Of a stretch of DNA of 64,000 bases, positions 5,860 to 33,489 are shown piece after piece. The translations under genes were made by a program, and so were the position numbers. This DNA is from Mustelus asterias. Its lineage: Eukaryota. Each line of letters opens with the position of its first letter. Positions within the stretch are counted from its first letter, which is position 1. The notes under the pieces were generated by a model, which was not told where the DNA came from, made no database searches, and was given only the letters and a program-made list of their open reading frames with translations. The stretch covers positions 1,426,001-1,490,000 of the forward strand of contig NW_027590128.1 of assembly GCF_964213995.1 (NCBI RefSeq), read 5' to 3'.

Positions 5860-6498
5860 TTCATTAAAGACTGCAATTTTATTCAATATTATAAGCGATG
5901 CATATGACAAAATAACAAGGTGACAGATATGCACAAAGGTGTGGTTAACGAACCAGAAGAGCATAAGACGGAGGAGCAGAAGTAGACCATTCGGCCCACC
6001 GGAGCTGTTTCGCCTTTCAATGAAATCATGGCTAGTTTGATATTATCCTCAACTCCACTTTACCACCTTAGCCCCATAACTCTCGCTTCCCCTGACTAAC
6101 CGGATGATCTTAAATGTGTATGAACGCCCCATTTGTGAAATAACCTGAGAGCAATAACCTGATTTTAGGCTAAGCCAGTGGCGAGATGTTCAAAAACTCT
6201 TGCTCATCTTACTTGTGAAATGCCGTGTAATGATAAAGCTCTGCACAGTGGCAAGTGGTGGCTCGATTATCTCTAAGGGTCCAGATGTACAGGCTGGGGT
6301 TTGGTGCCTCCGGGGCACTGGGAGGAAAATCTGGAGTCCAAGATCAAGTACGGGAGAGAGAATATCTCCTTGGCAACAATCTAAAAGCAGGTGGCATCCC
6401 ACTAACCGCCTGATATTCGCTCTGATCGACTTCCTTTGATTCAGAGGAGTAACTCCAGGCTGCCAAACTCACCCTTCCCTCCACTAGCTCTTGAAATA
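5860..6498 (-). other. TRDC: TCR-delta constant gene exon 4 (3' UTR) with polyA signal
   Basis: Pyrimidine-tract acceptor ...gtgtttctttcttag at 6500-6499; AATAAA on the minus strand at 5883-5878; follows the GT donor 1 nt after the TM stop, as in four-exon TRAC/TRDC genes. Confidence 0.65.
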
Positions 6499-7750
6499 CT
6501 AAGAAAGAAACACAGAGATTGATTAAAACTGAGCGGATCAGGTAGGGGTCATTTCAAAACCAGCTGACCTGTTCGCCATTCAAATCTAACTACTGAGTTA
6601 TCGAGTTTGATGAAAATCCGATCAGACCCTTGCTGATTTAATGTATCTTACGCTCTTAAATTGCATGCATTAAAATACAATGTTTAAAATAACTACCAGA
6701 GTAAAACAACCAAAAGGAACATGTGAGGTGCCATTACCTAGATTGCCCTGTAAAGGGCTGCCATTGTCACTATGGGCTGAGTGGCTGCTTTCTCTGGAAT
6801 AGGATTCTACTATTCTCAGCAAAGAATATAAAAATCGAAGTTCTATATGTCCTAAAATTGAAAATGCTGTTTTCAAAAATGTCTCCGACACTAATGCAGG
6901 CAGAAACCATATAAATGTTAGCTCCACGCTGTTGCTGAAATGCATAATTGAAATGTTTATGTAGCATAAGCAGCAGAATTCATGCAGAACCACGAGTTTC
7001 AAATCAAAATAACAGTGGAAAAAAGTTACCGAAATGAGGATCTTTAAAAGTTAAGTCGTCATTTAAAACAAGCGAGATTGAATTGCTTGAAGCGGAACTT
7101 CTGATCAGGAAGCCTCTGGATTTTGATGCCCCAGTCAATGAGTTCACACCTGAATCCATTTCATTGTCCAATGCAGTTCTGTTTCGAATGGAAGGAGCAA
7201 CAGTAAGTCATCAAAGCAACATCAAAGAGTCAGCAAGCAAAGAACACATTGTATCTTTAGGGTCTCCATTAACATTCTCCAATAATATTCTCAGAAGCCA
7301 CTGCAAGTGCACAAGAACCCTTACAGTGCAGAAGGATGCGATTTGGCACATAGAGTCTGCACCGACTCTCCGAAAGAGCCACACAGCTCATGACCAAGGG
7401 ATGGGAGTAAAAAGTTAGGCGAGTCAGTGACACGCATAATTAAACAAAACTCTGGAGAGGTTTAAGAAGTCAAGGCTGCGATTGGGAGCGGGAGTAGGGG
7501 GGCGGAGCGGGAGTAGGGGGGCGGGGGCGGGGGAGGGGGGGGGGTGGTGCGGTGGCAAGGGAGGGATGAAAAGCGATGAGGATGGGGCACTGGAGTAAGA
7601 GTTTGTTTGTCTGAATGCATCCAAGTTAATGCTCACTCCACGGGTTAGTTTCAGCGTCTGCCTTAACAGTGGCCTCGCGAGATCCCGTCAATGGACATTG
7701 TTCATCACAGTTTGTCTTTCTTGGCACGCATCCAGGTGACCGACCTTACC

Positions 7751-7860
7751 TCAAAATAGCCACACCCTGGCCGTCATCATGACATTAAAGACAATGCTCT
7801 TGAAAAACAAAAGTCTTAGCCCCATCACCGTCAAAGACAAAAAGTTCACCCTCAGTCGAT
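7751..7860 (-). CDS. TRDC: TCR-delta constant exon 3 (transmembrane/cytoplasmic): (D)RLRVNFLSLTVMGLRLLFFKSIVFNVMMTARVWLF*
   Basis: AG acceptor at 7862-7861, phase 1; delta-type VNxxSLTVxGLR motif with intramembrane Arg and Lys; TGA 7753-7751, then G and donor gtaagg. Confidence 0.93.
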
Positions 7861-8269
7861 CTGCCAAAATAAGACAAACAAATGATAGATCTGGTTAATG
7901 GATATATCATTTTGAATTGAAAAACAACTGTATACCACTAATGTGATATTTTTTCCATTATCTAACTGCTTGACTTTCGTCCGTCTGTCCATCCCTGTCC
8001 GTCCGTCCGTCTGCTTGCCTGTCTATCTATCTTTATCTCTCTTCCACTCTGAATTTCTCTCTCTCTCTCCCCGCCTCTCCTCTTCTCTCGCTATCCCCCT
8101 CGATTTATATATCTCTCTCCCTCACTCTGTGTGACAATCTATCTTTCTCCCCATCTCACTATATGTCTATCATTCAATCTCCGGGTCTGTATCCGTGCCT
8201 ATTTGTCCACTTATCAATCTGTCTATTTGCAAGTATTTTACTTCGATAAATGTTGAAGAAAGCACATAC

Positions 8270-8332
8270 CGTTTTCCGTGTCACTTGATTCTGTCGAGAA
8301 ATCATTTCGACTTGTAGGGCATTTAGGTTCAT
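8270..8332 (-). CDS. TRDC: TCR-delta constant exon 2 (connecting peptide): (D)EPKCPTSRNDFSTESSDTEN
   Basis: 63-nt phase 1-1 exon bounded by ...ccttccag and gtatgt; contains the interchain Cys. Confidence 0.88.
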
Positions 8333-9244
8333 CTGGAAGGGCAAAAAAGACATTTGACTTATTAAGTGAGCGAGTGACATTACTGGAACCATGTTTGGTC
8401 TCAGGATCACTTTGAATAATGTTGTCATAACCAATAACCACGAAGAAAGTAAGAATCAAACAGCACGATTGGACTTGTTCACTTGATGATTCACAACGGA
8501 GCAACATTGGTAGCTCTGCCATTTAGTTCGGCCCAAATCTGAGTTCAAAGAGTGCAGGGTCGATTCCCCATCAGGGATTAAAACCCAGGATCCAGGGCCG
8601 ATCCATCAGTGCAGTATTTCACTGTCTTCCGAAGAAGTCATGAATCCGAGGCCTGATTTCAGCTCTGCAGTGGATTAAATGATATCAGGGCATTTCTCCA
8701 GAGGAGCGGGGTTCTCCAGTGCCCTGGTTAGTATTTAATACTTTCGTAAATTCGGTGCTGCACCAGCAGCTGCGGCTCCTGGACACTGCCCTGAATTATA
8801 ATAGTTCGCTCTTATTATTTTTATTCACTTACGGAATGTGGACATCGCTGGCAGGTCAGCATTTATTGCCAATCCCTAATTGCCCACTTCAGAAGATGGT
8901 TGTGAGTCTCCTGCTTGAACCTCTGCAGTCTGTCAGGTGTAGGTACACACGCAGTGCTGTTAGGGAAGAAGTTCCACTATTTTGACCCAGCCACAGTGAA
9001 GGAACTGCCGATACATTTCCAAATCAGAATGCTGAGTGACTTGGAGGGGAACGTCCAGATGATGGTGTTCCCAGGCATCAGCTGCCCTTGTCCTCCGAAA
9101 TGATAGCGGTCGTGAGTTTGGAAGATTCAGCGGAAGGAGACTTGGAGAGTTACTGCAGTGTATATTGTGGATGGCACACACTGCTGCCACTGTGCATCGG
9201 TGGTGGAAGAAGTGGATGTTTGTGAATGGAGTATTTAATGCTCG

Positions 9245-9545
9245 AGCGGCACAGTGGCTAGTACTGCTGTCCCCACCCCTCCCCACAGCGGCAGGGACCT
9301 GGGTTCAATTCCCGGATTGGGTGACTGTGCAGAGTCTGCATGTTTTCCCCGTGTCAGCGGGGTTTGCTCTGGGTGCTGCAATTTCCTCCCACAGTCTGAA
9401 AGGTGTGCTGGTTAGGTGCATTGGCCATGCAAACTTTTTCATCAATGCACCCGAACAGGCGCCGGAGTGTGGCGACTAGGGGATTTTCAAAGTAACTTCA
9501 TTGCAGCTTTAATGTAAGCCTACTTGTGACACTAATAAATAAACG
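9245..9545 (+). mobile_element. V-SINE (HE1-related, alternative tail)
   Basis: tRNA head and V-domain; tail cccgaacaggcgccggagtgtggcgact...aataaataaac shared with the copies at 17364 and 50707. Confidence 0.7.
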
Positions 9546-9747
9546 TTTAATCAAGCGGAGCTGCTTCGTCCTGGATCTTGTCAAATTTCTAAGTGTTGTT
9601 GGAGTTGCACCCATCCAGGCAAGTAGAGAATACATTACCACAATCATGACTATATCTTGTGGATGGTGCAGATGATTTGGGGGTTCAGGAGATACGTTAC
9701 TCACCATAGGATTCCCAACCTCTGACATGCTCTTGCAGCCACAGCAC

Positions 9748-10387
9748 TTACAAAGAACAATGAACAAAGAACAGTACAGCACAGGAAACAGGCCCTTCGG
9801 CCCTCCAAGCCTGTGCCGCTCCATGGTCCAACGAGACCAATCGTTTGTATCCCTCCATTCCCAGGCTGCTCATGTGACTATCCAGGTAAGTCTTAAACGA
9901 TGTCAGCGTGCCTGCCTCCACCACCCTACTTGGCAGCGCATTCCAGGCCCCCACCAGCCTCTGTGTAAAAAACGTCCCTCTGATGTCTGAGTTATACTTC
10001 GCCCCTCTCAGCTTGAGCCCGTGACCCCTCGTGATCGTCACCTCCGACCTGGGAAAAAGCTTCCCACTGTTCACCCTATCTATCCCCTTCACAATCTTGT
10101 ACACCTCTATTAGATCTCCCCTCATTCTCCGTCTTTCCAAGGAGAACAACCCCAGTCTACCCAATCTCTCCTCATAGCTAAGACCCTCCATACCAGGCAA
10201 CATCCTGGTAAACCTTCTCTGCACTCTCTCCAATGCCTCCACGTCCTTCTGGTAGTGCGGCGACCAGAACTGGACGCAGTATTCCAAATGTGGCCTAACC
10301 AGCGTTCTATACAGCTGCATCATCAGACTCCAGCTTTTATACTCTATACCCCGTCCTATAAAGGCAAGCATACCATATGCCTTCTTC
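9748..10387 (-). mobile_element. Young CR1 LINE 3' fragment
   Basis: ORF 9748-10371 is the RT C-terminus (RPHLEYCVQFWSP); near-identical to the 3' part of 52541-53647. Confidence 0.92.
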
Positions 10388-11256
10388 TTATATGGATAGT
10401 CCAGTCCAGTTTCTGGGCAATGTTAACCCTCAGGATGTTGATGGGGGGATTCAGCTATGATAATGCCAGTAAATGCCAAGAGCTGATTGTTAGCTCCTTT
10501 CCTGTTGAAGGTGGTCATTGCCTGGAACATGTGTGGCACAAATGTTATTTGCAGTTTCTCAGTCAAAGCCGAGATATTTTCCAGCTGTTGCTGCATTTGT
10601 AATGCACTACTACAAGATCTGAGGTGTCATGAATGGTGCTGAAAATCGTTCAGTCATCAGCGAACATCCCAAATTCTGACCTTATAATGTATTGAAGGTG
10701 ACTGATAAAGCAACTGAAGCTGGTTGGGCCTGAGACACTGAGGAACTCCTGCAGTGAAGTCCCCAGACTAGAATAATTGACCGTCAATCATTAGTCAGCT
10801 AATCTTTCAAAAAGACTACATTTTGGGTGACGATGACACCGAGAGTCCTTCGGTTGTTAAGAGGATGGATAATATTTAGTGGACGTTCTTCCTATCATAA
10901 AACACTCTCAGAGGAGGCAGTGGCGCAGTGGCATTGTCACTGGACTAGTACTCCAACGACCCAGGATATTGATCTGGGGATGCGTGTTCGAAATCCACCA
11001 TGACAGATGCGAAATTTGATTATTTAAAAAAATGGAATTAGAAGTCTAATGATGACCATGAAATCATTGTCGATTATCGTTAAAACTCATCTGGTTCAGT
11101 AATATCCTTTAGAGAGGTAAATCTGCCGTCCTGGCATTGTCTGGCCGGCAAGTGACTCTTAAATGCCCTCTGCTGAAGGGTAGTTTAGGACTGGCAATAA
11201 ATGCTGGCCAAGCCAACGGCACCCACATCACATGAACGAAAATAAAATAAACTTAC

Positions 11257-11568
11257 CAATTTCAGCTGTGGGCGGGATGTTTACTGAGTAATTTTGATTA
11301 TCGTGAAATGCCTTGCACGTGATGTTTGGCGATTTCTCGGATTGGGGGAAAGAGAGAAAACCCGAGCTCCTGTAGTACCCACTCTCCAATAGGACACTGG
11401 ATCTTGTCACATTGGCCTCCTTGCCGGATCCCGTGCAAAGGGAGAGCTTGATTGTTTTGGGGGAGAAGTCCGAGGCCAAGCAAACGGCAGCTGTGTCGAT
11501 GTCGGTTGTTCCCGGTGGCACTGGCGGGTAAAAAATGTTCAATTTTGGGATTTTCGGGTCTTTCGCCT
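11257..11568 (-). CDS. TRDC: TCR-delta constant exon 1 (Ig C domain): AKDPKIPKLNIFYPP...AAVCLASDFSPK...NITCKAFH...TAEI
   Basis: 312-nt phase 1-1 exon (ttccag / gtaagt); C1-set VCLASDFSP and ITC motifs; splices in frame to the hinge and delta-type TM exons. Confidence 0.92.
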
Positions 11569-11927: not shown

Positions 11928-13967
11928 ATGGGTGAGATCCTAAATGAAGATTTCTCATCAGTATTTACTGTTGAGAAAAGCATGGATGTGAGGGAACTTG
12001 GGGAAATAAATAGTGATGTACGTATTACAGAGAAGGAGATGCTGGAAGTCTTAAAGCGCATCGAGGTAGATAAATTCCCGCGACCTGATGATGTGCATCG
12101 TTGGATATTGTGGGAGGCAAGGGAGGAATTTGCGGGACTCCGAGCAGAGATATTTGAATCATCGTTAGTCACAAGTGAGGTGCTGAAGATTGGAGGGTGG
12201 CAAATGTTGTGCCTTTGTTTAAAAAGGGCTGCAGGGAAAAGCCTGGGAACTATAGGCCAGTGAGCCTCACATCTATGGTGGGTAAGTTGCTGGAACGTAT
12301 TTTGAGAGACAGGATCTCCAGGCATTTAGAGATGCAAGGACTGGTTAGGGACAGTCGGCATGGCTTTGTGAGTGGAAAATCATGTGTCACAAATTTGATT
12401 GAGTTTTTGAAGGGATAGCCAAGAAGGTCAGTGCAGTTGATGTTGTCCACATGGAATTTAGCAAGGCCTGTGACAAGTTTCCACATGGTAGGTTGTTCGT
12501 AAGGTTAAATCTCACGGGATCCAGGGTGAGGAAGATAAATGGATACAAAATTGGCTTGACAGAAGCCAGAGGGTGGTTGTAGAGGTTGTTATTCAAACTG
12601 GAGGCCTGCGACCAGCGGTGAACCTCAGGGATCAGTGTTGGGCCAAGGTTATTTGTCATCTATATTAATGATTTGGATGAAAATATAGGAGGCATGGTTG
12701 GTAAGTTTGCAGGTGACACCAAGATTTGTGGCATAGTGGACAGCGCGGAAGGTTATTTCGGATTGCAACGGGATCTTGATCAATTGGGCCAGTAGGCTAA
12801 CGAATGGCCGATGGAGTTTAATTTAGACAAATGCGAGGTGAGGCATTTTGGTAGATTGAACCAGGGCAGGACTTACTCAGTTAATGGTAGGGCGTTGGGG
12901 AGACTTACAGAACAAAGAGATCTAGGGGTACAGGTTCATAGCTCCTTGAAAGTGGAGTCACAGGTGGACAGAGTGGTGAAGACGGCATTCAGCATGCTTG
13001 GTTTCATTGGTCAGAACATTGAATATTGGAGTTGGGACGTCTTGTTGAAGTTATACAAGACGTAAGGCCACACTTTGAATGATGTGTACAGTTCTGGTCA
13101 CCCTATTATAGAAAGGATATTATTAAACTAGAAAGAGTGCAGAAAAGATTTTCTAGGATGCTAACGGGATTTGGTGGTTTGAATCATAGAAACCCTACAG
13201 TGCAGAAGGAGGCCATTCGGCCCATCGAGTCTGCACCGACCACAATCCCACACAGGCCCTACCTCCACATACTTTACCCACTAATCCCTCTAACCTACGC
13301 ATCCCAGGACTCTAAGGAGCAATTTTTTTAACCTGGCCAATTAACCTAACCCACACATCTTTGGACTGTGGGAGGAAACCGGAGCACCCGGAGGAAACCC
13401 ACGCAGACACGAGGAGAATGTGCAAACTCCACACAGACAGTGACCCGAGCCGGGAATCGAACCCAGAACCCTGGAGCTGTGCAGCAGCAGTGCTAACCAC
13501 TGTGCTACCGTGCCGCCCTATTGAGTTATAAGGAGAGGCTGGATAGATTGGAACTTTTTTCCCTGGAGTGTAGAAGGCTGAGGGGTGATCTCATAGAGCT
13601 CTATAAAATAATGAGGGGCATAGATCAGTTAGATAGTCAATATCTTTTTCCAAAGGTAGGGGAATCTGAAACTAGAGGGCATAGGTTCAAGGTGAGAGGG
13701 GAGAGATACAAAAGTGTCCACAGGGGCATTTTGTTCACACAGCGGGTGGTGAGTGTCCGGAACAAGCCGCCAGAGGTAGTAGTAGAGGCAGGTACAATTT
13801 TGTGTTTTAAAAAGCATTTGGATAGTTACATGGGGGTAAGATGGATACAGAGGGATATGGGCCAAATGCAGGCAATTGGGGCTAGCTTAGGGCTTAAAAA
13901 ATGGACGCCATGAAAAAGTTGGGCCAAAAGGCCTGTTTCCATGTTGTAAACCTCTATGATTCTATGA
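11928..13967 (+). mobile_element. CR1 LINE (decayed ORF2)
   Basis: Fragmented ORFs (PGNYRPVSLTS, MEFNLDKCEV, LERVQ) and (tctatgac) tail; same subfamily as 33490-34590 and 41870-43570. Confidence 0.88.
13184..13518 (-). mobile_element. HE1-type V-SINE inserted in CR1
   Basis: Reverse complement begins gggcggcacggtagcacagtggttagcactgc...gggttcgattcccgg; V-domain intact. Confidence 0.85.
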
Positions 13968-14444: not shown

Positions 14445-14484
<40 letters not shown>

Positions 14485-18823: not shown

Positions 18824-18883
18824 TGGGTTCGACAGTGAGTTTTATTCCACTGCCAAAGATAAGCTTTCTGATTGCAAAGTGTG
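18824..18883 (-). other. TRDJ: J segment J8, HFAIRKLIFGSGIKLTVEP; heptamer variant CATAGTG, probably non-functional or weak
   Basis: FGxG motif, donor gtaagc; RSS catagtg (18884-18890), 12-bp spacer, acaaaattg (18903-18911). Confidence 0.88.
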
Positions 18884-19924
18884 CATAGTGATACCAGATG
18901 GTACAAAATTGACATAACCCCATGAATAGCAATGTTAGGATTGTTTTTCATGACGAGGTTTTTGAAATTCGATTTGCTTCCACAGCCGGTTCATCTGCGT
19001 TGATGCAGGATGGCGGCAGGATCGAGAACCGGGGCTCATTGCCAAAGGATATGGGACTGACATGAGGAGAATTTCTTTTTCACCAAGTGAATGAAAATCC
19101 CGTGCAATTCACAATTACAAAGCAGTTGAAGCCAAAGCATTATGCTTCCAAGAAAGAATTAAATATGGCTCTTGGGCTAAAAGGATAAAAGGATATGAGG
19201 GGAAAGCAGGAACAGGCTATTGAGTTGGATGACCAACCTTGGTCATAATGAATGGTGGAGGAGGCTGGAAGGGCCGAATGGCTTACTCCTGCTCCAACTT
19301 CCTATGTTTCTATTTCCACTCTCCCATTAAACTTAAGTTCCTTTGCTCGAATGTTTCAAAAGCCCATGAGTGGCGGGATGATAATGCCACTGAAAAAGTA
19401 TTACAGAGGTCACGACAACACATTTGGCTACGTGCGTATAAATCCCATCATGGCATCTGGTGGAACTTCAATTTGATTAATAAAATCTGGAGTTGAAATC
19501 TAGTCTCAGGAATGGGACCATGAAACAATTGTTGATTCTCTTCAGGACTCGACAGAATCACTAATGTCCTTCAGGGAAGGAAATCCCACATGTCCTGTTC
19601 TACTTGTGACTCCAGACCAAGAGCAATGTAGTTGGCTCGCAACTGTCCGTCTAAAACTGAGAAAGTCACTCATTTCAAAGGGCAATTAGGGATGAATAAC
19701 AAATGTTCGCCTTTCCAGTGACGCTCATAAGTGTAAATGCTAAAACAGCATTCGAAAGAGGCATCAAAGGCACATCAGGGCACTTTCCATCCCTCAGGAT
19801 TTTATTCTTTAAACAGCTATGAGAACCCTATTTCTGTTGGAATTATCCACCGAAGCCATCAGTTTGTCTATCAGTACAGTTGTTCTATCGTAACTGTAAG
19901 ACCCTCTATGTGTTTTTTGCCAGA

Positions 19925-21071: not shown

Positions 21072-21121
21072 TTGGTACAACTGTCACCTGGGTGCCGCTG
21101 CCGAACGTTAGCTTATCGTAG
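21072..21121 (-). CDS. TRDJ: J segment J7, functional: YDKLTFGSGTQVTVVP
   Basis: RSS cacagta (21122-21128), 12-bp spacer, acagaaacc (21141-21149); FGSG; donor gtgagt, phase 1. Confidence 0.93.
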
Positions 21122-22199
21122 CACAGTAACAATTGCTCAGACAGAAACCTTCTATTGAGATAGCTGTTTCAGATTTCAGGCAGTTCACGGCAAAGGCAAA
21201 GCTGGAATAGTCACTGATTCGCTGCAGGTAACAGATATTGCATATCTTCCCCTTCGCACCATCAAAGGCTAAATTGGCCGAATACCCTCCTTGGATGCTC
21301 TAAGATTCTATCAACGTGAAGAATTTCTGAGCCAAGGTAGCCACTAGTCAAAGATAGCATCCACATCCTCCCCTGCAACAAATATATTTAGCCTCTGAAC
21401 ATAGGTTAGGAAACATAGGAACAAGGGAAGGCTATTCAGCCCTTTGCGCCTGCTGTGCCAATCTCTGAAATGCCTTAACAGAAATTTGCAACATGGCCTA
21501 GCCAGTGACGCCTCAACCCCTGGCAGAAAAGAAATACGATTCAAATGATAGTATTTAATTTGTTAACTAAGCTTTCCCTCCTTACAGATGCTGCCTGACC
21601 TGCTGGGGGTTTTCCCAACATTATCTGTTCTTATTGTCATAATCCTGTTAGATTTCGAAGAGGTAAGTCAGTTGAGTCTGAAAGATGCGTTTACGTTTCG
21701 TTGAATCAACTCGGGCTCATTTTCCAAAAGGGAGAGATTTTGTATTCATTCATGGGACATGGGCAACGGGTGGCTGACCAGCATTTATTATTCATTCCCA
21801 ATTGCCCTTGAGAGTCAACCAAATTGCATATGTAGGCCAGGTCAGATCAGGATGGCAGATTTCTTTCTCTAAAGGACATTACTCAACCAGGTGGGTTTTT
21901 CCAACAATGGCTTTCTTTGTCGACAGTAGATTCTTAATTGCAGATTATTGAATTCAAATTCCACCATCTGCCGTGGCGAGATTTGAACGCGGGTCGCCAG
22001 AAAACTATTGAGTTCCTGGATTAATAATCTAGCGATAATACCACTAGGCCACTGCCGCGACCCAGTTCCACCACCTCACAATAATGCAAGGTCACCCAAT
22101 GAAACGAATATGCCAGGTGGTTGGGAACTTATGTAAGGAGTCAGGGAAGGAGGGAACAAGGACAAAACATGATGTAGAAAAGGAAATAAGAAAAATGAT

Positions 22200-25123
22200 A
22201 GGCAGAGAAACCAAGGACAAAATTCAAAAAGGGCTATAGAGAAAAGTACTGGGAGCGAGGCAATCAATGTTAAAAAGATAAGCTTAAAGGCTCTGTGCCT
22301 TAATGCGCGGAGTATTTGCAATAAAGGGAATGAACTAATCTTGCAGATAGATGTAAACGGGTATGCTATAATTGGAATTATGGAGACATGGCTGCAGGGT
22401 TCCCAGGGATGAGAACTGAATGTCCCAGGGTATTCAGTAGTTAGGAAGGACAGGCATAAAGGAAAAAGTGGTGGAGTGGCACTGCTGGCTAAAGAGGAAA
22501 TTAACACAATAGTGAGAAAGGATATTAGCTCTGATATTGTGGCATCTGTGCGGGTAGAGTTGAGAGATACCAATGGGGCAGAAAACATCAGTGGGTGTCA
22601 TATATAGACCCCGAAACTGCAGTGGTGATGTTGGAAATGGCATTAAACACGAAATTAGAGATCAATGGTGATTTTAATCTGCACATTGATTGAGCAACTC
22701 AAATTAACCACAATTAGAGGACGAATTTCTGGAGTGGATACGGGATGGTTTCCCTGACCAATATGTGAAGGAACCAACTAGGGAGCAGGCCACCTTAGAC
22801 TGGGTGCTGTGTAGTGACAAGGTAATAATTGCCAATTATTAGCTGTGCGAGACCCCTTGGGGATGAGTGATCATAGCATGAGAGAATTTTTTATCAGGAT
22901 GGAGAGTGAAGTAGTTGACTCAGAGACTACAATGCTGAATCTTAATGAAGGAAACTATGAGGATATGAGGCGTGATTTGGCCTTCATAGATTGGGGAGAC
23001 ATATTTAAAGGGATGACAATGGATAGGCAACGTGAAACATTCAAGGAACGCATGGGGGAACTGTAGCAACTGTTTATCCCTGTCTGGCACAAAAGCAAAA
23101 TCAGTAAGAGCGTCAATCCATGGCTTACAAAGGAAATTAGAGATAGTATCCGATCAAAGGAAGAAGCATACAGATTGGCCAAGAACAACAATAAGACTAA
23201 GGATTGGGAGCAGTTTAGAATTCAGCAAAGTACGAAGGGATTGATTAACAAGGGGAAAATGCAGTCCGAAAGTAAACTTGCAGGGAACATAAAGACTGAC
23301 ACTAATACTTTCTAAATGTAGATCCCCTACAGACAGAGATGGGGGAATGTATAATAGGGGACAAGGAAATGACTGACCAGCTGAATACATACTTTGGTTC
23401 TCTCTTCACAAATGAGGACACAAATCAGATACCAGAAATGTTGGAGAATGCAATATTGAGTAAGAGGGAAGAACTGAGGGAAATCAACATGAGTAGAGAA
23501 ATGTTGCTGGGAAGATTGATGGGATTGAATGTGGATAAATCCCCAGGGGTTGATAATCTACATCCCAGAGTACTTGAGGAAGTGGCTCTAGAAATAATGG
23601 ATGCATTGGTGGTAATCTTCCAGGATTCTATAGACTCTGGAAGAGTCCCTGCAGATTGGAGAGTAGCTAATGTTATTCCAATATTCAGAAAGGGTTGTAG
23701 AGAGAAAACAGGGAATTATAGACCAGTAAGCCTCACATCGGTAGTGGGGAAAATTCTCGAATCCATTATCAAGTACTTATAGCGGAGTACTTTGAAAGCA
23801 GTGGCAGGATCAGACAGAATCAGCATGGATTTATGAAGGGGAAATCATGCTTGAGAAATCTGTTGGAATTCTTTGAAGATGTAACGAGTAGGGTTGACAA
23901 GGGGGAGCCAGTCGATGTGGTATATTTGGACTTTAAGAAATCGTTTGGCAAAGTCCCGCATAAGAGATTATCGGGCATATTTAAAGTGCATGGAATTGGG
24001 GAACTGTATTTAGATGGACAGAAAATTGGTTGGCAGAGAGGAAATAAAGAGTAGGAATTAATTTGCCATTTTCAAATTGGCAGGCAGTATCTTGTGGAGT
24101 GCCACAGGGATCGGTGCTGGGACCCCAGCTATTCACAATATGTATTAATGATTTGGACGAGGGAACAAAATGTAACATCTCAAAGTTTGCAGATGATACC
24201 AAGTTGGCTGGGAGGGTGAACTGTGACGAGGATGCAGAGATCCTTCAGCCTGATCTGGACAGGCTGGGTGAGTTGTCAAATCAGTGGTAGATGCAGTATA
24301 ATTTGGATAAGTGTGAGTTTATTCACTTTGGAAACAAAAACAAGAAGGCAGATTACTACCTGAATGGCTCTAAATTGGGGGAGGAGAGTTTGCATCGAGA
24401 CCTGGGTGTCCTTATTCAACAGTCGCTGAAGTTAAGCATGCAGGTGCAGCAGGCAGTAAAGAAGGCAAATGGTATGCTGGCCTTCATTGCGAGTGGTTTT
24501 GAGTACAGGAGCAGGGATGTGTCATTGCAATTATAGAGGGACTTGGTGAGGCCGCACCTAGAATATTGTGTGCAGTTTTGGTCTCCTTTTCTGAGGAAGG
24601 ATGTCTTTGCTCTCGAGGTACTGCAGCGAAACTTTACCAGGCTGATTCCGGGGATGATGGAGCTGATGTACGAGGAGAGATTGACTAGGTTAGGACTGTT
24701 TTCGCTGGACTTCAGACGAATGAGGGGGGAATCTTATGGAGACTTACAAAATTCCGATAGGACGAGACAGCATAGATGCAGGGAGGATGTTCCTGATGAT
24801 GAGGGAGTCCAGAATCAGGGGTCACAGTCTGAGGATTCGTGGTGGACCATTTAGGACGGAGGTGAGGAGACATTTCTTCACCCAAGGAGTGCTAGCTTGT
24901 GGAATTCATTACCCCAGGAAGTAGTAGATGCCAAAACATTGAATGTACTCAAGAGGCAGCTAGATATAGCACTTGGGGCGAATGGGATCAAAAGTTATGG
25001 GGAAAAAGCAGGATTAGGTTACTGAGTTGGACGATCAGCCGTGATCGTAATGAAGGGCAGAGTAGGCTCGAAGGGCCGAATGGCCTCCTCCTGCTACGAT
25101 CTTCTACGTTTTTATGTTTCTAT
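22200..25123 (+). mobile_element. Long CR1 LINE with decayed ORF2 (endonuclease plus RT)
   Basis: APE N-terminus (LCLNARSICNK...GIMETWL) near 22280, RT motifs to about 24950, 3' UTR with (tttctatg) tail; multiple stops and frameshifts. Confidence 0.9.
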
Positions 25124-25377
25124 GAGGCACCCATCAATGCCTGTCACATTGCTGAGGCCTAAAGATTGGCCTGCCACCTGCAGCATGTCTAAATAAGCAT
25201 TGAGACCTGAGCTAGCTGTCTCCCTATCTTCTTGAAGCTCATCTTACAGGCAGAATGCGTTCAATTGTATTCCATGTAATACTTTGTATCGTTGTCTACT
25301 TGCTATTTGTCAGACACCATATAGCGAAAACATAATCTGCATGAAACAAAATGAATGTAACTTCCAATCGTACTCAT

Positions 25378-25438: not shown

Positions 25439-26019
25439 CACAGTACAAAGAGCACAGACATAAACCTTCCATTGGAGTGAAGATGCAGCTGTCATTTAGC
25501 GCATGATGAATCACACTCATTAATTCGAGGGCAGAGCAATATATACAAAGTTCACATTAGGAAGAGCCCTTGAGACCCTTGAAGGAAACTTCAGCTACTT
25601 AAATTCTAACCAGATCCAAACTGAAAATTTTAAATGTCTTATTCGGTTGAATAGTGAATGCGTTGCTCTGCCAAAGATAAGTTTTAAAGTTTTGGTGCTA
25701 GAACATCTGTACACAATGTGACAAAAAATTAAACCGAACCAGATGAGCCGAAATATAAGATTTATTTACATTTTATTTCTCCTGAGTTTGAGTTTTGAGT
25801 TCAATTTCAGCTTCTGCTGACTTCAATAGCCAGGGCAGGTTATATCTTGAAAGAAAAATATTTCCCCATCCACCAATTTAAATGCAATTCCCTCTTCCAG
25901 CCTGTTAGCTCCATATGACATATATTTCTATCCACTTTACAAATGGGAATTTAATTCTCAGTAAATATTGTTCAGATTTTCTGCGTCCGCAGTGCTTCAC
26001 TTTTTGTGAGGGTGCTTAT

Positions 26020-26751: not shown

Positions 26752-27398
26752 CACATTGCCAGTGGAAAGTTATCAATGCATAAGGTCATTCAGTTTCTGG
26801 CTAATACACATAGCAAGGAAACTGGAACATTGCCTAATGGGCGGGATGCCTTGAAAGCTGCCATGGTGTGCGAAGAGTTCATCTTAACATTGATTTACCA
26901 CCAACAGAGGAACAATGAATCTTATACGATTGTATAACACGAAGGACATCTAACCCCAAATTCCCTTACTGCACCCAGTGGTGCACAAAGGCAGAATTAA
27001 TCTGCTTCCAGAGCTAGCTATTTTTGGAACAGTTCGCTATACTGTTGCCAGGGGCTTAGAGATTTAGGAAGCCACGCTCCATATCAAACGTGGCTGAGCA
27101 GGAATCGCTCCCACTCTTACCACCAGTGTTGGGCTGCGTTATGAACTCAGCTTCCTTGGCCATTAAGTACATTGATTAGAACTCGAACCCGACGTTTCTG
27201 GCTCAGAGGCAGAGACTTTAACACACTACGCCACAAGACCTCCTCAAATTATTAATGGCCATTATATTACCCCTCCTCCCCAAAAGTCGATACTGATTGA
27301 AAAAAAAACACGATATCGTAACTTATATATTCGAACTGTAACTTTCAATTATCCCCCTACTGTAAATAGATCAGGATGGAAAATAGTTGAGGACTTAC

Positions 27399-27458
27399 TG
27401 GGCTTCACAGTGAATTTTGTCCCTTTGCCCAAGACAAGCTTCTCAGTTTGGTAGATAG
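27399..27458 (-). pseudogene. TRDJ: J segment J3, IYQTEKLVLGKGTKFTVKP; heptamer AACAGTG
   Basis: LGKG motif; donor gtaagt; RSS aacagtg (27459-27465), 12-bp spacer, acaaaacat, lacking the essential first C. Confidence 0.83.
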
Positions 27459-27541
27459 AACAGTGATAACGGCTACCACAAAACATAGAACCAGCCACAT
27501 GAACACAGGGCTAGCTTACATTCAGTTTAAGTTAATGTTAC

Positions 27542-27600
27542 TCGTCTTAATTAGCTTCTCTCCCGAACCAAATGTAACAGTTTCCTCCTTCCCGCTCCCT
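27542..27600 (-). pseudogene. TRDJ: J relic J2, GSGKEETVTFGSGEKLIKT
   Basis: FGSG, FR4 one codon short, donor gtaaca, heptamer-like cacactt at 27601-27607, no good nonamer. Confidence 0.6.
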
Positions 27601-28748
27601 CACACTTAGTTACTACGTTTTTCACAATTTTAAAAGGCACATTATTGGATCAATAAATCGACTGTGCTTCATATTTTCCATCTCCCCTGATATCTCTCCC
27701 TGAGCAGAAGTAGGCTATTCGGTTCACCATTCAATGAGATCATGGCTGATCTGATGTGATAATCCTCAACTCCATTTTCCCACCGTATGCCCATCACCCT
27801 CAAATTCCTTGTGGATTTAAAATCTGTCTATCCCAGGACTGAATATTATTAACGACAGCCCTCTGCGGTAAAGATGTCCACAGATTAGGAACCATCCGAA
27901 AGAAGAAATTCTTCATCATCTCTTTCTTTAAATGGACAACCCCTTACTCTAGGATTATGCCTCTGGTCCTTGACTCTCCCACCAGGGAATAAAATAGAAG
28001 TCTACAGCACATCAAGGGTCCTGCGGCCCATCGTGTCTGCCCCACCAAAGGTAAACCAGCTGACTTTTCTAATCCTATTTTCCAGCACTTGGCCCATTGC
28101 CGTTTGTGATATGGCATTTCAAGTGCATATCCAAATACACCTTAAATGTTGTGTGGGTTTCTGTCAACACCAGCCTTTCAGGCACTGAGTCCCAGGCTCC
28201 TATCGCCCTTTGGGGGAAAAGTTCTCTTCACATTCTCTCTAACTCTCCTACCCCGCACTTTAACTCAATGCATCGCCCCCAAAAAGCACTGCTCATTGAT
28301 CCCTCTATTATGGGGATAGGTGTCTTCCTGTCTACTCTATCTCTGTCCCTCATTAGGCTGAAACAACTTTTACAGTGCTGTCTATCTCTATGGCTCTATG
28401 ACTCTATCGGGATGTTCCTCTTTTAACTATCTATCAATGTATCATTTAATTGCATTACACACAATCATTTCAGCAATACATCTCCTTGCCAGCTACCCAG
28501 GTGGGTTTTCATGATAAAGGCCAGTTAAATGTTTTAAGGAAACAATCCTGAATTGTGGAAACAATAAAGTTCTCATTGCTCTATCTCAATGCCCAGTGAA
28601 GCTGCTCTTTGGATTCCCAATGAGAACTGCTCACCCGTTCCATACAACAACAGTGATAATTGAAATAACACAGCGATTGTATGTCTCAATGAAGTCATGG
28701 AGGGAAAGTAACATGTTGAGTAATCATTATCCAGGATTAGTTACTTAC

Positions 28749-28809
28749 TGGGTTTCACAATCAGCCTGCTTCCATTGCCAAAGATGAGCTTTCTAGTCTC
28801 TCCATGTTA
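28749..28809 (-). CDS. TRDJ: J segment J1, apparently functional: HGETRKLIFGNGSRLIVKP
   Basis: RSS cacaccg (28810-28816), 12-bp spacer, acaagatcc (28829-28837); FGNG; donor gtaagt. The terminal TAA at the coding end needs trimming during joining. Confidence 0.88.
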
Positions 28810-28877
28810 CACACCGTTTGATTCCATAACAAGATCCATTGTGGTCTCGTCCACCTTTCTCTGTCCTTCTGCCGTGT

Positions 28878-28939
28878 AAGAAGTTTAACAACACCAGGCT
28901 AAAGTCCAACAGGTTTATTTGGTCGCAAAAGCCACACAA
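28878..28939. mobile_element. 62-bp Penelope-derived insertion with 12-bp target-site duplication
   Basis: cttctgccgtgt at 28866-28877 and 28940-28951; the insert matches the element at 30412-30658. Confidence 0.8.
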
Positions 28940-29106
28940 CTTCTGCCGTGTCCCAGTGGGGGTGGGTCAGTAATGGTGTACGCTCGGTGGGGATGGAAGG
29001 CGGTGGTGGGGAGTGGTGTTGGGAGGGTGCTATTGAGAGAGTTTGGTTTTCTCCCGTGGTGCTGGGAGGTTATTGTACGGGCGTTAAGAGAGATTCAAAT
29101 ACTGTG

Positions 29107-29419
29107 GTCCCAGATGTGCTCCGACTCAGTGCACAGTAATACACAGCGGAATCGCTCAGTTCCAGTTTGGAGATCTTTAACCAGCTGATTTTCTCGGCAG
29201 ATTCGATAGAAGCAGAAATTCTCCCCCCGGCAGCATTTTCTTTATTCTCCTCTCCTGAAGTGTGTTTCTGCAGCAGGTATTTCAGAGCCTGCCCTGCGGA
29301 CTGACTGTACCAGTGTACTGTGTACTGACAGAGACCTGAATATTCACAGCTTAAAGCAACCGTGTCACCAGCAGCAGAGGTTTGGAGAGGTGGATTCTTA
29401 GACACCAGGGAACGAGAAT
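29107..29419 (-). CDS. TRDV: Leaderless supporting TCR V-delta of NAR-TCR: DSRSLVSKNPP...LSCEYSGLCQYTVHWY...DSAVYYCALSRSTSG
   Basis: Open V exon with phase-1 acceptor; extra Cys in CDR1; RSS cacagta (29106-29100), 23-bp spacer, acaataacc (29076-29068). No leader exon seen upstream; the NAR-J donor is in phase. Confidence 0.92.
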
Positions 29420-30411
29420 CTGGAGGATAAAAAAAGAAACAGCGTTTTCTTCTGTGGTTCAGTCACTGTTTACCAGGGGAATGTGTCAATTGCGGGAGTA
29501 GCTCAGTTTTATCCGGTGTTATTATTATTTTAAATCTGATGGAACTGTATTCACTGTTATTATTATTGTAAACCAGTGGAAAATGAGGTTTTCTTTACAC
29601 AACAAGATCCAACGGTCTGGAATGCAATGTCAGAATGATGGTGGGAGCTGAATCAGCAGTGACAAACACACGGGAATAGTCAAGCGCTGGAACAGGAATA
29701 AAATAGGGTTATGGGGAAAATTCATGACTGAGGGGAAGAACTGGATTTCACTTATAAAGGGCTGCATCTACTCGAGGGGCCGAATGTCACCCTTTTGCAC
29801 TCTATGATTCAATGATGTATGTTACATTTCACTTTCTATTTCCCTTCCTAAGAGACAAACACGAGGGAACATTTTATTATCAGTGAGGCAATCCGTTCCA
29901 AGTGACTAACCCAGCTGCGCTACGTCGAAGCGCACAGCAAGATCCAACAGGGAATGACTGTGATTCATCAGCTCCAATGGGGATGGAATGATGTTGAACA
30001 TCGGTGCTCAAATGTCATTCCTTTATATCTGTTTAACACTTCCCGGGAATCTCTGTTTATTCATCTGTTTGGTTTTCTTCTGCTATCTAACTATCAGGAA
30101 CATCTTTTTCTCTTTACTTGGAAATATTTACAGTCAGTTTTATTTTGTTTCAACATTTATTTTGCGCTGTTTGGGTTCGTTGCAATCGTGGAAAGTTCTC
30201 CCAAAGTCTCTCAGTTGTCAGTTGGGTTTATTCTGTTCAGTTCCTGCAGTGGTTTTACAGTTACTCACTGGGAACTGCCTCTTCTGGCTCTCTGACAATT
30301 TCAATTCTTTTTTTGCTCTTTAACTGATTCTCTTCTGCTCTCTCTGGGCGGAATTTTTTCTCAGTTTTACGTTGTATAGAAACTGCAGAAGAGGAACAGG
30401 CAATACACCCG

Positions 30412-30658
30412 TCATGATGTGGAGATGCCGGCGTTGGACTGGGGTAAACACAGTAAGAAGTTTAACAACACCAGGTTAAAGTCCAACAGGTTTATTTGGT
30501 AGCAAAAGCCACACAAGCTTTCGGAGCTGCAAGCCCCTTCTTCAGATGAGTGACTCACTCACCTGAAGAAGGGGCTTGCAGCTCCGAAAGCTTGTGTGGC
30601 TTTTGCTATCAAATAAACCTGTTGGACTTTAACCTGGTGTTGTTAAACTTCTTACTGT
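30412..30658. mobile_element. Penelope-like pLTR fragment forming a 209-bp palindrome
   Basis: Arms 30450-30553 and 30555-30658, 1-nt spacer, two mismatches. Related fragments at 28878, 36095, 37397, 38541 and 43895. Confidence 0.8.
30559..30596 (+). ncRNA. Minimal type-I hammerhead ribozyme motif (mirror copy on the minus strand at about 30512-30549)
   Basis: CAC-CUGAAGA-A-GGGGC[UUGCA]GCUCC-GAA-AGCU-U-GUG: catalytic core, stem II and palindromic AGCU stem III, as in Penelope pLTR hammerheads. Confidence 0.6.
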
Positions 30659-31837
30659 AGATAAACCCGACCAGCCTCACCCGTCAGAAATCTAATTGAT
30701 CATTTCTATCCAGCTCACTCTGTCGGTCTATTCTGTTCTCCCTTCAGTATTTTCGAGTCTTCCCATAAATGTACCACTCGCCTCTGCTCCAAACAGTCAA
30801 TGTGACAGCGAGATCCACATTCTGGCTCTCCCTGTTTGAATTTATTCGAATTGATATATTTATTTTCTCCTGTAAATGACAACTGTCAGGAAACAAAGGT
30901 AGTTTAACTAATCTCTTCAGTGTTTTTGGACATTAGAAATAAAGTATAGGTTTAAGTCAGTTTAGTTTAATATTTCAGTATAAAAATGGTAAAACTCCAG
31001 TTATATTCATTTCAAACAAAAATGTTTTCATGTGTGGGGGATTTGGTTTCATTTTAAATTATGCCTCTTTTGACGGTGGAAAATGAGGAAAGTGATTGGT
31101 TATGTGGAGGATGTTTAGAGGAATGTCAGGTACAATTTCACTAATTTCAGTAACTGATTTCTCTATTGAAAAATACAATCTAGAACTAAACAGGGTATCT
31201 AATGTCTGAAGTCCGTTGTCTCTTTTATTCTATTTGTCTCCCGGGACAGGTATTGGATGAACTGTTGCGGTTAAATGAACTGTCCGCAGTGGCACTGATC
31301 TCATTCAACCGGTAGCTTCTTCATATTACACGGCAGGGACTGCAGTCTACTGCCCAGGATAGAGCTCTGCGATCCCACTGCCGGGCTGTTCGAGACAGGC
31401 AGATCTCCCTCGGTCACAATTAACACCGAAGGTGGATTCCAGAGTGCCGATAATTTGTTATAAACTATCAGGATTGTGAAAGCCCTTGATATGGATGTTA
31501 ACCCCGATGTGCCCGTTAAACTAATAATGACCCAAATACTGTCAACCCTCACATCACAGCCCATCCACCCCCCACCCCTCCACTTCCATCCCCACAACCA
31601 CCACTATCCCTACAGCGCTGACCGCCTTCTGCATCAGGTCTCACACTCGCTTTCCCCAGGGCTGACTTGGATCGACTCCCAAATCACGTCCTGCCCCCAA
31701 ATCAAAATCTGTAACGGATCTGTAAACAGATCCTTATCCGTATCAATTGGACTGAAACGATACAGATCACGATAATAAAATGACGGTGAACGTTAAACGA
31801 GACATTTTGTAACACGGCGGGGTTTGGAGTCACTTAC

Positions 31838-31890
31838 CGGCTGTGACAGTCACCACCGTCCCTGATCCATCGGCTTCATACCAGGTCGGA
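31838..31890 (-). CDS. NAR-TCR J segment: PTWYEADGSGTVVTVTA
   Basis: IgNAR-like DGxG motif; RSS cacactg (31891-31897), 22-bp spacer, acaagaacg; donor gtaagt, phase 1. Confidence 0.9.
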
Positions 31891-32266
31891 CACACTGATA
31901 CCGATCTCAGTCTCCCCGTACAAGAACGACCGACTACTCAACTTGACGGGAAATCATCACAGTCATTTGGAAGTTCCCATTATTCGGGGGATTTAAATCA
32001 ATAAATATTATTCAATGTTTTGAAGTCTCTGTCAGTTCAAACTGTTCTTTTTGAGGCCCCGCGTTCTCAGTAAATATCCCCAGGTAGGAGATAGTCGCTT
32101 CATATTAACCGAGAAAAATATCAAAGAAAGATGTGAGTGATGGAAAGTGCAATGTAATTAATCCAGATTGCAGCGCTAATAACATCAACCCATAATTCTC
32201 TCTCTGGGCCCTGAGAATGTATAAGGTAATTGTGCACAGGTATTTGCTCAGCTCCTTTTCACTGTG

Positions 32267-32283
32267 ACTCCCCCAATCATTTA
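32267..32283 (-). other. NAR-TCR D segment (TAAATGATTGGGGGAGT) with 12/12 RSSs
   Basis: Plus strand: ggtatttgc (32239-32247), 12 bp, cactgtg (32260-32266), D, cacagtg (32284-32290), 12 bp, atcaaaacc (32303-32311). Confidence 0.88.
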
Positions 32284-32675
32284 CACAGTGTTATAATTCA
32301 GCATCAAAACCCCATATACTGTGTGAGATGTAGGGACATTAATTAAACAGCGGGGACTGCGGTTCCCAGTTCCAGCTGAGAGACGATGATCCCATCTTTT
32401 GTTTGGGTTTGTAAGGTGGGATCAGTCATTTCCATTCTTCGTTCATCAACGCCAATCCCGGAAAGATATCAGCTTCCGCACACACTTCATGTTTATAACA
32501 CTCAGAATGTTAACGGTAATAATCAAATCCTCATTATAAACTTGACTGTGGGATTGACGGTGTGCGATGGAACTGTGCGGGTGTCAGGGAAGATTAACTC
32601 CGCTTTTTCATTTGTTTATGTGAAAATCTTCAGTGAGAGTTTTAGTATGGCGGGAAGCCAAGACCCATCACTGTG

Positions 32676-32964
32676 TTGTCGCCTTTGTAATGAGCTTTAC
32701 AGTAATAGGTGGCGGCGTCTTCAACTCTCACATCCCGAATTTCCAACGAAAATGTCTTTGTTGCTTTATTCACCGACACAACAAATCTCCCTCCGTCGGA
32801 GACCCGCTCCCGCTTTGTCCCAGCCTGTATTTGTCTGAAGAATTCCGCCCTCTCCAAAGCACGAGCAAAGAATCCACCATAGAAAACACAGGTGATGGTG
32901 AGGGACTGACATTCCTTTCTGGTCACCGCTGCCGGGCTCTGTACCACTGACTGACTGAAAGATC
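32676..32964 (-). CDS. NAR-TCR V exon (IgNAR-like): SFSQSVVQSPAAVTRKECQSLTITCVFYGG...EFFRQ...GGRFVVSVNKATKTFSLEIRDVRVEDAATYYCKAHYKGD
   Basis: Short V lacking CDR2/C'-C''; vNAR-like GGR..SVN..K.FSL.I.D..VED..TYYCKA; extra FR1 Cys; RSS cacagtg (32675-32669), 22-bp spacer, actaaaact. Confidence 0.92.
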
Positions 32965-33112
32965 CTGGAAATTAAATACAGAGAGTTTAAAGGCCCATCA
33001 GAGCTGAACCACACAACGGGGCTAAAACTCCAGACAATGTCTGTAATTGGGATGGACTGGGGCAGCTTTCTATTCAATTCACACAATGTAGTTTAGTGTG
33101 ATCAGTACTCAC

Positions 33113-33155
33113 TGGGTAAACAGACACACAGGCTGAAAACAAGAAGGATTCCCAT
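33113..33155 (-). CDS. NAR-TCR leader exon MGILLVFSLCVCLP
   Basis: ATG at 33155, hydrophobic peptide, donor gtgagt in phase 1, 148-bp intron to the V exon. Confidence 0.88.
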
Positions 33156-33489
33156 CGCTCTGCTGCCCGGAGCTGATGGTTTATATGACGGGGAGCTGGA
33201 GACTGCAGAGCTGGACTGCTCTGGGACACTGGATCTCAGAGCTGAACTGAAAGACATCAGGCCCGAACGTCGTCAATTTAGGCCACGCCCATTGTTTAAA
33301 ATAAATCTCGAGAATCTAAAGGTGGCGGGAAGCTATGAACATTCAGTCGAGGTTCCATAGTTATCGCTGCCTCGGAGCTCCCGACCCCAGAATCTCGTCC
33401 CGCGACCCCTCTGGCTGTTGCCACCCAGAGTTTGGGAATGTCCCTCTTTGTCAAAAGCAAGTAAGATTCTTATTCTTTTATTTTTTTTC

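Follow-up and report, generated by a model that had tools for sequence, protein, structure and literature searches.

A structurally intact NAR-TCR delta unit in Mustelus asterias, probably one of a family of duplicated C-delta modules

The window, i.e. the whole stretch of 64,000 nucleotides analysed here, probably represents a structurally intact cluster-type TCR-delta unit, one of a family of duplicated C-delta modules and not a piece of an alpha/delta translocon. All the parts of a three-domain TCR-delta chain, from leader, NAR-V, D and NAR-J to supporting V, Js and C, were read in order and with matching phases on about 27 kb of the minus strand, as the original prediction had claimed. The layout of the unit is [leader - NAR-V - D - NAR-J - leaderless supporting V - J array - C-delta]. 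Features given below are on the minus strand unless marked (+).

The NAR cassette and the supporting V

The leader exon of the NAR-TCR chain (33155-33113) was read directly on the minus strand; it has its ATG at 33155 and a phase-1 GT donor at 33112-33111, and RefSeq model XP_078058183.1 (P0006) begins with its translation. The NAR-V exon (32964-32676) encodes an IgNAR-like V domain with a Pfam V-set match and an extra Cys in its first strand. Among solved structures it comes closest to shark VNAR domains (E 2e-19), and on this similarity the distal V domain is related to IgNAR V, as in NAR-TCR. It is bordered by a 22-spacer RSS (32675-32638; CACAGTG, 22-nt spacer, ACTAAAACT). The NAR D segment (32283-32267, 17 nt; 32239..32311 including RSSs) has a 12-spacer RSS on either side, and NAR-J (31890-31838; 31838..31928 with RSS) has a 22-spacer RSS upstream and a phase-1 GTAAGT donor. 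This combination of spacers (V 22, D 12/12, J 22) permits V-D-J joining of the cassette, another property of NAR-TCR.

Instead of a leader exon, the supporting V (29419-29107; Pfam V-set, E 4e-13) starts at a splice acceptor (AG 29421-29420, phase 1). This acceptor (29420) matches the phase-1 donor of NAR-J (31837), making an in-frame splice possible. A supporting V with an acceptor in place of its leader, spliced to NAR-J, is what we take to be a defining feature of NAR-TCR. The exon also displays an additional Cys in CDR1 and a long germline tail past its YYCAL motif, and is followed by a 23-spacer RSS (29106-29068; CACAGTA, 23-nt spacer, ACAATAACC). A relaxed D scan on both strands of the window detected no D between the supporting V and the Js, the sole D-type element being the NAR D. 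Since no D precedes the Js and J1 lies only about 230 bp beyond the RSS of the supporting V, the second domain must result from a direct V-J join, the sole option in cis. Rearrangement of the supporting V with D-delta, which counts as a defining NAR-TCR trait in a single passage of PMC5931798, thus has no counterpart in the layout of this unit.

The RSSs of the unit fit the 12/23 rule. A strict scan of the whole window returned 11 heptamer sites. As chance control, 100 dinucleotide-preserving shuffles of the window gave 3.0 +/- 1.8 sites and never more than 8. Of the 11 sites, 9 adjoin a V, D or J coding segment found independently.

J segments

The predicted J array was indeed present next to the cassette, with nine J-like segments (28809 to 18824) in place of the eight announced. 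Two are fully canonical. J1 (coding 28809-28749; 28749..28837 with RSS) has an FGNG motif, a phase-1 GTAAGT donor and a 12-spacer RSS, and the same J peptide forms the link from V to C in P0028, a paralogous model. The other (coding 21121-21072; 21072..21149 with RSS) combines FGSG, a phase-1 GTGAGT donor and a 12-spacer RSS. Lesions were found in the remaining seven. In the last J (18883-18824; 18824..18911 with RSS), coding sequence and donor are intact and the heptamer reads CACTATG, the base triplet adjoining the coding end being altered. The others are located at 27600-27542 (weak RSS, atypical motif), 27458-27399 (LGKG, heptamer ending in GTT), about 26741-26678 (in-frame TAG, VGNG), 26079-26020 (LGTG, AT replacing the GT donor), about 25711-25650 (FGRA) and 25438-25378 (good RSS and FGRG, AT replacing the GT donor).

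The constant region and its copies

Exon 1 of C-delta (11568-11257, phase 1 at both ends) encodes an Ig C1-set domain (Pfam C1-set). Exon 2 (8332-8270), also present in P0006, encodes a connecting peptide with the interchain Cys, and exon 3 (7860-7750) a transmembrane segment with conserved Arg and Lys and a short tail ending at TGA 7753-7751. These three coding exons were read directly; the fourth of the four C-delta exons initially proposed is a putative untranslated 3'UTR exon (6498 to about 5860), drawn from two elements, the acceptor used by P0006 (AG 6500-6499) and a poly-A signal (AATAAA 5883-5878).

The motif CLASDFSP of exon 1 matches the trdc signature CLXXXFXP and mismatches the trac signature CLXTD, as both are given in a passage of PMC10322711. 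Of the 22 library matches of this exon, two, from Hypanus and Leucoraja, bear the name "T cell receptor delta constant", and no alpha constant occurred among the 18 of the 22 whose names were looked up. By its sequence, the constant region of the unit is of TCR-delta type, again as in NAR-TCR.

The original prediction suggested that this may be a second C-delta locus and proposed counting the paralogues. This count gave 13 M. asterias RefSeq models carrying C-delta, on 12 contigs and of at least four sequence types. The unit does not hold the sole C-delta, and 'second' understates a module that is repeated: NAR-V, supporting V and C-delta are combined in 6 of the 13 models, which identifies the unit as a repeated module. 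Paralogous models also draw on the same J types, pointing to duplication of the whole module; P0028, for instance, is a chain of NAR-V, NAR-J, supporting V, a J1-type J and C. The C-delta type of the window is 83-89% identical to the other types (83-93% among the four), and one C type alone spans six to seven contigs. In other sharks, the same search gave one to two C-delta models per species. The classical alpha/delta translocon holds one C-delta per genome, and M. asterias does not conform to this. RefSeq models are computed, with pseudo-introns bridging unrearranged segments, and are no proof of transcripts. P0006 is made of the window's own exons and is 100% identical to C exon 1.

Together with P0028, the C of the window type forms a distinct lineage (support 99/97). 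Exon 3, the transmembrane exon, is almost invariant among all aligned shark C-delta sequences, including the M. asterias copies, which suggests purifying selection.

Surroundings of the unit

A conventional TCR alpha/delta-type V that looks intact (leader 48247-48202, exon 47839-47533; 23-RSS with a perfect nonamer) lies 14 kb upstream of the unit, in the same orientation. It could use the Js and C of the unit, and the proposed specialisation of the locus for NAR-TCR stays conjectural. An inverted V pseudogene (44998..45340, (+)) has a 22/23-spacer RSS and an in-frame TAG at 45237-45239. LINE and SINE fragments fill the introns.

Predicted assembly and expression

From this organisation, we infer the following course of rearrangement and expression. 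In a thymocyte, RAG would join NAR-V (22-RSS) to D (12/12) and D to NAR-J (22-RSS). In a separate event, and without any D, it would link the supporting V with its 23-RSS straight to a J with a 12-RSS; the likely partner would be J1, at a distance of about 230 bp, or else the J located at 21.1 kb. Transcription would start at the NAR-V leader, and phase-1 splices would follow at the junctions leader/NAR-VDJ, NAR-J/supporting VJ and J/C exons 1-3. The chain predicted to result has three domains, namely NAR-V, V-delta and C-delta, and a transmembrane segment of CD3 type, and would presumably pair with TCR-gamma.

Alternative explanations

The window could lie where the V array of the sole classical alpha/delta translocon ends on its 3' side, with the cassette near J-delta/C-delta and with J-alpha/C-alpha further downstream, according to the layout 5'-trdc-(traj)n-trac-3' described in PMC10322711. 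Passages of PMC5931798, PMC6795676 and PMC12227049 place NAR-TCR in the TCR-delta locus and treat shark TCR genes as translocon type, and just 5.8 kb past C-delta are visible in the window. These 5.8 kb, downstream of the poly-A site, hold no J, J-alpha-like segments included; D-delta is absent from the window, the contig is a 1.8 Mb scaffold, and with at least four diverged types of C-delta spread over 12 contigs of one species, a sole ordinary locus is very improbable. It is somewhat easier to conceive, though still unlikely, that the unit is a real duplicate now silent or dying, its open frames left from a recent duplication. Lesions in seven of the nine J-like segments, the stop codon in the inverted V and the repeat insertions in the J-C and NAR-J-to-V introns suggest that the unit may be decaying. 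Against this stand the intact state of all that a single productive chain requires (including two canonical Js, the three C exons, the phases and the RSSs), the distinct C lineage shared with P0028 and the transmembrane exon kept invariant.

Multiplicity or compactness could also have been produced by the assembly, from haplotigs or mis-joined near-identical repeats. Many C-delta contigs are small unplaced scaffolds (0.03-1.8 Mb), and contigs aligned over the cassette differ by 1-2% from the window. P0028 and the window are 99% identical in NAR-V and 96% over the whole C region, their C being two residues apart outside an alternative end; some C-delta copies, such as P0028, may represent the other haplotype instead of paralogues. 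However, two haplotypes cannot yield four C types, or a single type spread over six to seven contigs. The four sequencing runs found all consist of DNA-like contigs. Of the words sampled from a 4.55 kb cassette stretch, 71% and 68% were present exactly in runs X1 and X2, respectively, and all the joints seen involve a single SINE family, either inside one copy or from copy to copy. None of the listed contigs bridges the supporting V and J1, because of the SINE between them. An artefact of this kind is, of the explanations considered, the one to which we give the least credit.

Comparison with known systems

Reading the window as one member of a family of C-delta modules invites comparison with other receptors. 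NAR-TCR was reportedly described in nurse shark by Criscitiello, Saltis and Flajnik in 2006. As in the unit, the nurse shark supporting V is leaderless and an additional pair of cysteines occurs. To our knowledge, T-cell receptors with three domains are known in two forms, NAR-TCR and TCR-mu. In passages of PMC5931798, PMC3457774 and PMC12227049, NAR-TCR is presented as an IgNAR-like V, equipped with a separate D and J, atop a spliced-in supporting V-delta, followed by the TCR-delta constant; a passage of PMC5931798 adds that the V domains are each assembled independently by V(D)J rearrangement and assigns the genes to the TCR-delta locus. As far as these descriptions go, the unit shares with nurse shark NAR-TCR the distal IgNAR-like V with D and J, the supporting V, the TCR-delta C and the three domains. 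It differs by a supporting V without D and with a J at about 230 bp, by its own J array and C-delta, and by the whole module being multi-copy.

The closest analogue of the unit, and no family member, is the platypus TCR-mu cluster, given as [V1-Dn-J1-V2-J2-C] in passages of PMC7615758 and PMC3457774. As described there, both have the same segment order, a second domain made by D-less V-J joining, more than one cluster in the genome and a chain of three domains whose distal V is unpaired. The likeness is one of layout only, namely the order without a second D, since homology to VH or C-mu was not found: TCR-mu has VH-related V genes and its own C-mu, whereas the unit has a NAR-type distal V and a delta-type C. 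The same two sources, in the parts concerned, treat NAR-TCR and TCR-mu as convergent. If true, a shark [V1-D-J1-V2-J2-C] with a D-less second domain would extend the convergence of NAR-TCR and TCR-mu to the level of gene organisation.

Duck TCR-delta2 uses antibody-type V genes in a two-domain chain and is one extra locus rather than a family. We know of no NAR cassette in it. A passage of PMC5278385 describes it as a second avian C-delta-bearing locus outside the classical alpha/delta locus, and in that respect, an additional C-delta-bearing locus apart from the classical one, it resembles the unit.

On a wider reading, to which we would give about even chances, TCR-delta of M. asterias was rebuilt in the style of shark antibodies, as a family of clusters alternating with IgM clusters. 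Each TCR-delta cluster would be self-contained, possessing a V or NAR cassette, a J array and a C-delta of its own. NAR clusters would have lost D-delta, leaving the supporting domain as a low-diversity V-J scaffold, and would constitute an independent shark version of monotreme TCR-mu, i.e. TCR clusters in a lineage described as having a translocon. If true, a TCR locus would be capable of the arrangement in multiple clusters known from shark antibody genes. The differences in C-delta exon 1 type offer a handle on dedicated NAR constant genes, cluster-specific T-cell subsets and exclusion among delta clusters.

The elasmobranch antigen-receptor complex is described in passages of PMC12227049 as IgH miniclusters linked to TCR alpha/delta, the latter being a translocon. 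Its main text, in the parts considered, includes neither several C-delta genes nor NAR cassettes owning a C, and M. asterias differs on both points. The likeness lies in the IgM constant gene found at 60.6-63.1 kb of the window, beside TCR-type Vs. This neighbour bears on the origin of Ig-TCR chimeric rearrangements in cis; it has the same orientation as the unit, from whose cassette it is separated by TCR-type V segments.

Organization of the NAR-TCR delta unit

Direct reading of the sequence placed every part of a NAR-TCR delta unit on the minus strand. The leader exon (33155-33113) stops at a GT donor placed behind a codon's first base. It is followed by the NAR-V exon (32964-32676), on whose 3' side CACAGTG is separated by a 22-nt spacer from ACTAAAACT. 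Next come a D element of 17 nt (32283-32267), with a 12-spacer recombination signal (RSS) on each side, and a NAR-J segment (31890-31838) with a 22-spacer signal upstream and a GTAAGT donor in phase 1. The supporting V exon (29419-29107) begins at a phase-1 splice acceptor, lacks a leader of its own and is followed, 3' of 29107, by CACAGTA, a 23-nt spacer and ACAATAACC. When the window exons were each searched singly rather than as a joined chain, the closest solved structures for the NAR-V exon were shark VNAR domains (E 2e-19), and the supporting V, as well as the conventional V lying upstream, was assigned to the Pfam V-set. Extra cysteines were found in the first strand of NAR-V and in CDR1 of the supporting V. 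These two residues may form an interdomain bond, as is reportedly described in a 2006 paper on NAR-TCR.

A strict RSS scan of both strands returned 11 heptamer sites in the window, versus 3.0 ± 1.8 sites (maximum 8) in 100 dinucleotide-preserving shuffles, and nine of the 11 adjoined an independently found V, D or J coding segment. The remaining two, at 42704 and 45399, had no coding segment alongside and were set aside as chance occurrences. The original prediction of a complete unit was borne out by the parts and phases read directly and by RSS sites above the shuffle level.

An open frame at 30001-29911 (minus strand) was considered as a leader for the supporting V. It opens with an ATG, and its phase-1 GT donor matches the phase of the supporting-V acceptor, but it was rejected for want of a hydrophobic signal-peptide core. 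The exon matching it is the first exon of one paralogous RefSeq model (P0032), the frame being conserved between copies; this first exon is probably an annotation device.

J array and predicted assembly of the second domain

Nine J-like segments were found between 28809 and 18824 (minus strand). The first, J1 (28809-28749), is fully canonical, with a 12-spacer signal, an FGNG motif and a phase-1 GTAAGT donor, as is the segment at 21121-21072; a third (18883-18824) is intact in its coding sequence and donor, with a heptamer altered in the base triplet beside the coding end. The other six are lesioned by replacement of the FGXG phenylalanine, an in-frame stop, a weak signal or an AT in place of the GT donor. 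This last lesion occurs twice, with AT at the exact donor site of two separate J segments (25376-25377 and 26018-26019, minus strand).

A relaxed scan of the whole window, in which a heptamer and a nonamer were sought on both sides with any spacer combination and on both strands, recovered the NAR D as the only D-type element besides chance pairings at two V-segment ends. As there is no other D and J1 begins approximately 230 bp beyond the supporting-V RSS, the second domain can be assembled in cis only via a direct 23/12 V-J join. The supporting V carries an unusually long germline tail 3' of its YYCAL motif, which would bring CDR3 to normal length although no D contributes. The unit most likely functions as a self-contained cluster of doubly rearranging NAR-TCR-delta type, its second domain being produced by V-J joining. 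The nearest layout is that of the platypus TCR-mu clusters, described in PMC7615758 as [V1-DN-J1-V2-J2-C] with a V2 used without D.

Constant gene and its RefSeq model

C-delta exon 1 (11568-11257, minus strand, as are the following exons) belongs to the Pfam C1-set, and both of its boundaries are in phase 1; it therefore continues the reading frame from either J1 or the J at 21.1 kb. Exon 2 (8332-8270) codes for a connecting peptide that contains a cysteine, and exon 3 (7860-7750) for a transmembrane segment with the conserved Arg and Lys, ending in TGA. A putative untranslated exon 4 (6498 to about 5860) was placed solely by the RefSeq acceptor and a poly-A signal (AATAAA, 5883-5878).

The top solved-structure matches of exon 1 were antibody heavy-chain constant domains, which could not separate delta from alpha, and the assignment was consequently based on a peptide signature and on named relatives. 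Exon 1 carries CLASDFSP, which agrees with the trdc signature CLXXXFXP but not with that of trac, both published in PMC10322711. Among its 22 relatives in a library-wide protein search, one protein of Hypanus sabinus and one of Leucoraja erinacea bear the name "T cell receptor delta constant", and no alpha constant was found among the 18 of the 22 whose names were checked.

One library protein was 100% identical to exon 1, namely XP_078058183.1 (P0006), a M. asterias model that is 385 aa long and comes from a contig of 1,795,720 bp. It is composed of the window leader, NAR-V, part of NAR-J, the supporting V and the C exons, skips J and uses an alternative donor within exon 3. Because it is a computed model with pseudo-introns across unrearranged segments, it does not constitute transcript evidence. 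The alternative donor is a GT at 7764-7765 (minus strand), from which the model splices to the 3' exon; this predicted event replaces the last four residues.

C-delta paralogues in Mustelus asterias

The original prediction raised the possibility of a second C-delta locus, specialised for NAR-TCR, and called for a count of C-delta paralogues. A library-wide exon-1 search, complemented by two public gene models as queries, gathered 13 M. asterias RefSeq models with C-delta, distributed over 12 contigs. Eleven of these contigs measure 34 kb to 1.8 Mb; the twelfth, of 20.4 Mb, holds two models. Six of the 13 models (P0003, P0006, P0028, P0029, P0030 and P0031) also contain NAR-V and a supporting V. 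C-delta is thus multicopy, and this part of the prediction stood. The unit may not serve NAR chains alone: an intact conventional V oriented like the unit (leader 48247-48202, exon 47839-47533, minus strand; 23-RSS with a perfect nonamer) is located 14 kb upstream and could use the same Js and C.

Pairwise identities distinguished at least four C-region types. The window type comprises P0006 and P0028 (96% identity, with two residues differing outside the alternative end of P0006), type A comprises P0029, P0003, P0031, P0077 and, approximately, P0030 (95-100% within the type), type B comprises P0005 and P0074 (99%), and P0032 stands alone. The window C region is 83-89% identical to the other types. 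In a C-region tree of 17 sequences (one of 18 rows having been dropped), the ten Mustelus rows fell on one side of a branch with weak support (60/86, 58% of bootstrap trees), and the window-type pair was well supported (99/97). Branches were at most 0.07 within Mustelus versus 0.46 to catshark.

One explanation for the closest model, P0028, is that it represents an allele of the window unit. It has the order NAR-V, NAR-J, supporting V, J1-type J and C, and its NAR-V is 99% identical to that of the window; its supporting V, however, is only 91% identical, and the window supporting V is 96% identical to that of P0029, of type A. Such a mosaic speaks against a simple allele, and the combination of NAR-V, supporting V and C suggests, at the level of sequence, exchange between units by gene conversion or recombination. 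The paralogous models also have the same three J types as the window, which points to duplication of whole modules. Judged by these comparisons, M. asterias has a family of duplicated C-delta modules to which the window unit belongs.

Four runs of one study (X1-X4), stored as contigs, contained 42-71% of the words sampled from a mostly non-coding stretch and hence represent DNA; no run is listed as RNA. Of the 30 bins between 27300 and 33290, all were covered by contigs from X1 and from X2, and 28 by those from X3 and from X4. Difference-free contigs were present at 27300-28752, and the longest contigs over the cassette showed 1-2% differences, which fit a near-identical second copy such as the P0028 locus. 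Within 27300-33290, the interval from the supporting V to J1 was bridged by no listed contig. The only joints, at 28.9 kb and 30.3-30.7 kb, fell inside copies of a single SINE family or connected one such copy to another. SINE-like copies form a near-perfect inverted pair at 30460-30640, inside the intron that separates NAR-J from the supporting V, and a third lies at 28895-28960, on the stretch from the supporting V to J1; contig depth at these copies was thousands-fold over the flanks and is not readable as copy number.

Shark TCR genes are described as having a translocon arrangement (PMC6795676). Neither several C-delta genes nor a cluster-type NAR-TCR in a shark turned up in the literature library searched.

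Occurrence in other sharks

A search started from P0006 retrieved 77 proteins at E 1e-10 among 3,390 candidates. Matches outside Mustelus were mostly models of about 220-380 aa covering some 55-60% of the query, approximately the length of NAR-V plus supporting V, and often many of them were located on one chromosome-scale contig. A search restricted to the C region returned 14 proteins among 140 candidates: at least eight from M. asterias in addition to the query, at least two from Heptranchias perlo, at least one each from Scyliorhinus canicula, Pristiophorus japonicus and Rhincodon typus, and one further protein. These counts are lower bounds, drawn from proteins of 176-560 aa sharing short words with the query, and annotation varies by species.

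A basking shark model (P0012, Cetorhinus maximus, 707 aa) has a J directly after the supporting V, then further V domains and C-delta. As J is read straight after the supporting V in this model, V-J adjacency may be older than Mustelus.

Genomic neighbourhood

An inverted V with an in-frame TAG was found at 44998-45301 (plus strand). Like the TCR unit, the IgM exons for the constant domains CH2, CH3 and CH4, the last with the secretory tail, are on the minus strand; they occupy 60606-63065, some 13 kb upstream of the conventional V, which places an antibody cluster directly beside the C-delta unit. [quoted passage not shown]

Reverse-transcriptase fragments of one LINE family were scattered over the introns and spacers of the unit at 9748-10371 (minus), 12197-13913 (plus) and 22845-24854 (plus), with further fragments at 33788-34432 (plus), 40389-40955 (minus), 42669-43556 (plus) and 52334-54474 (plus). 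Long TG/CA microsatellites were also present in introns and spacers, at 11.7-12.0, 14.0-15.3, 34.5-35.4 and 58.2-59.5 kb.
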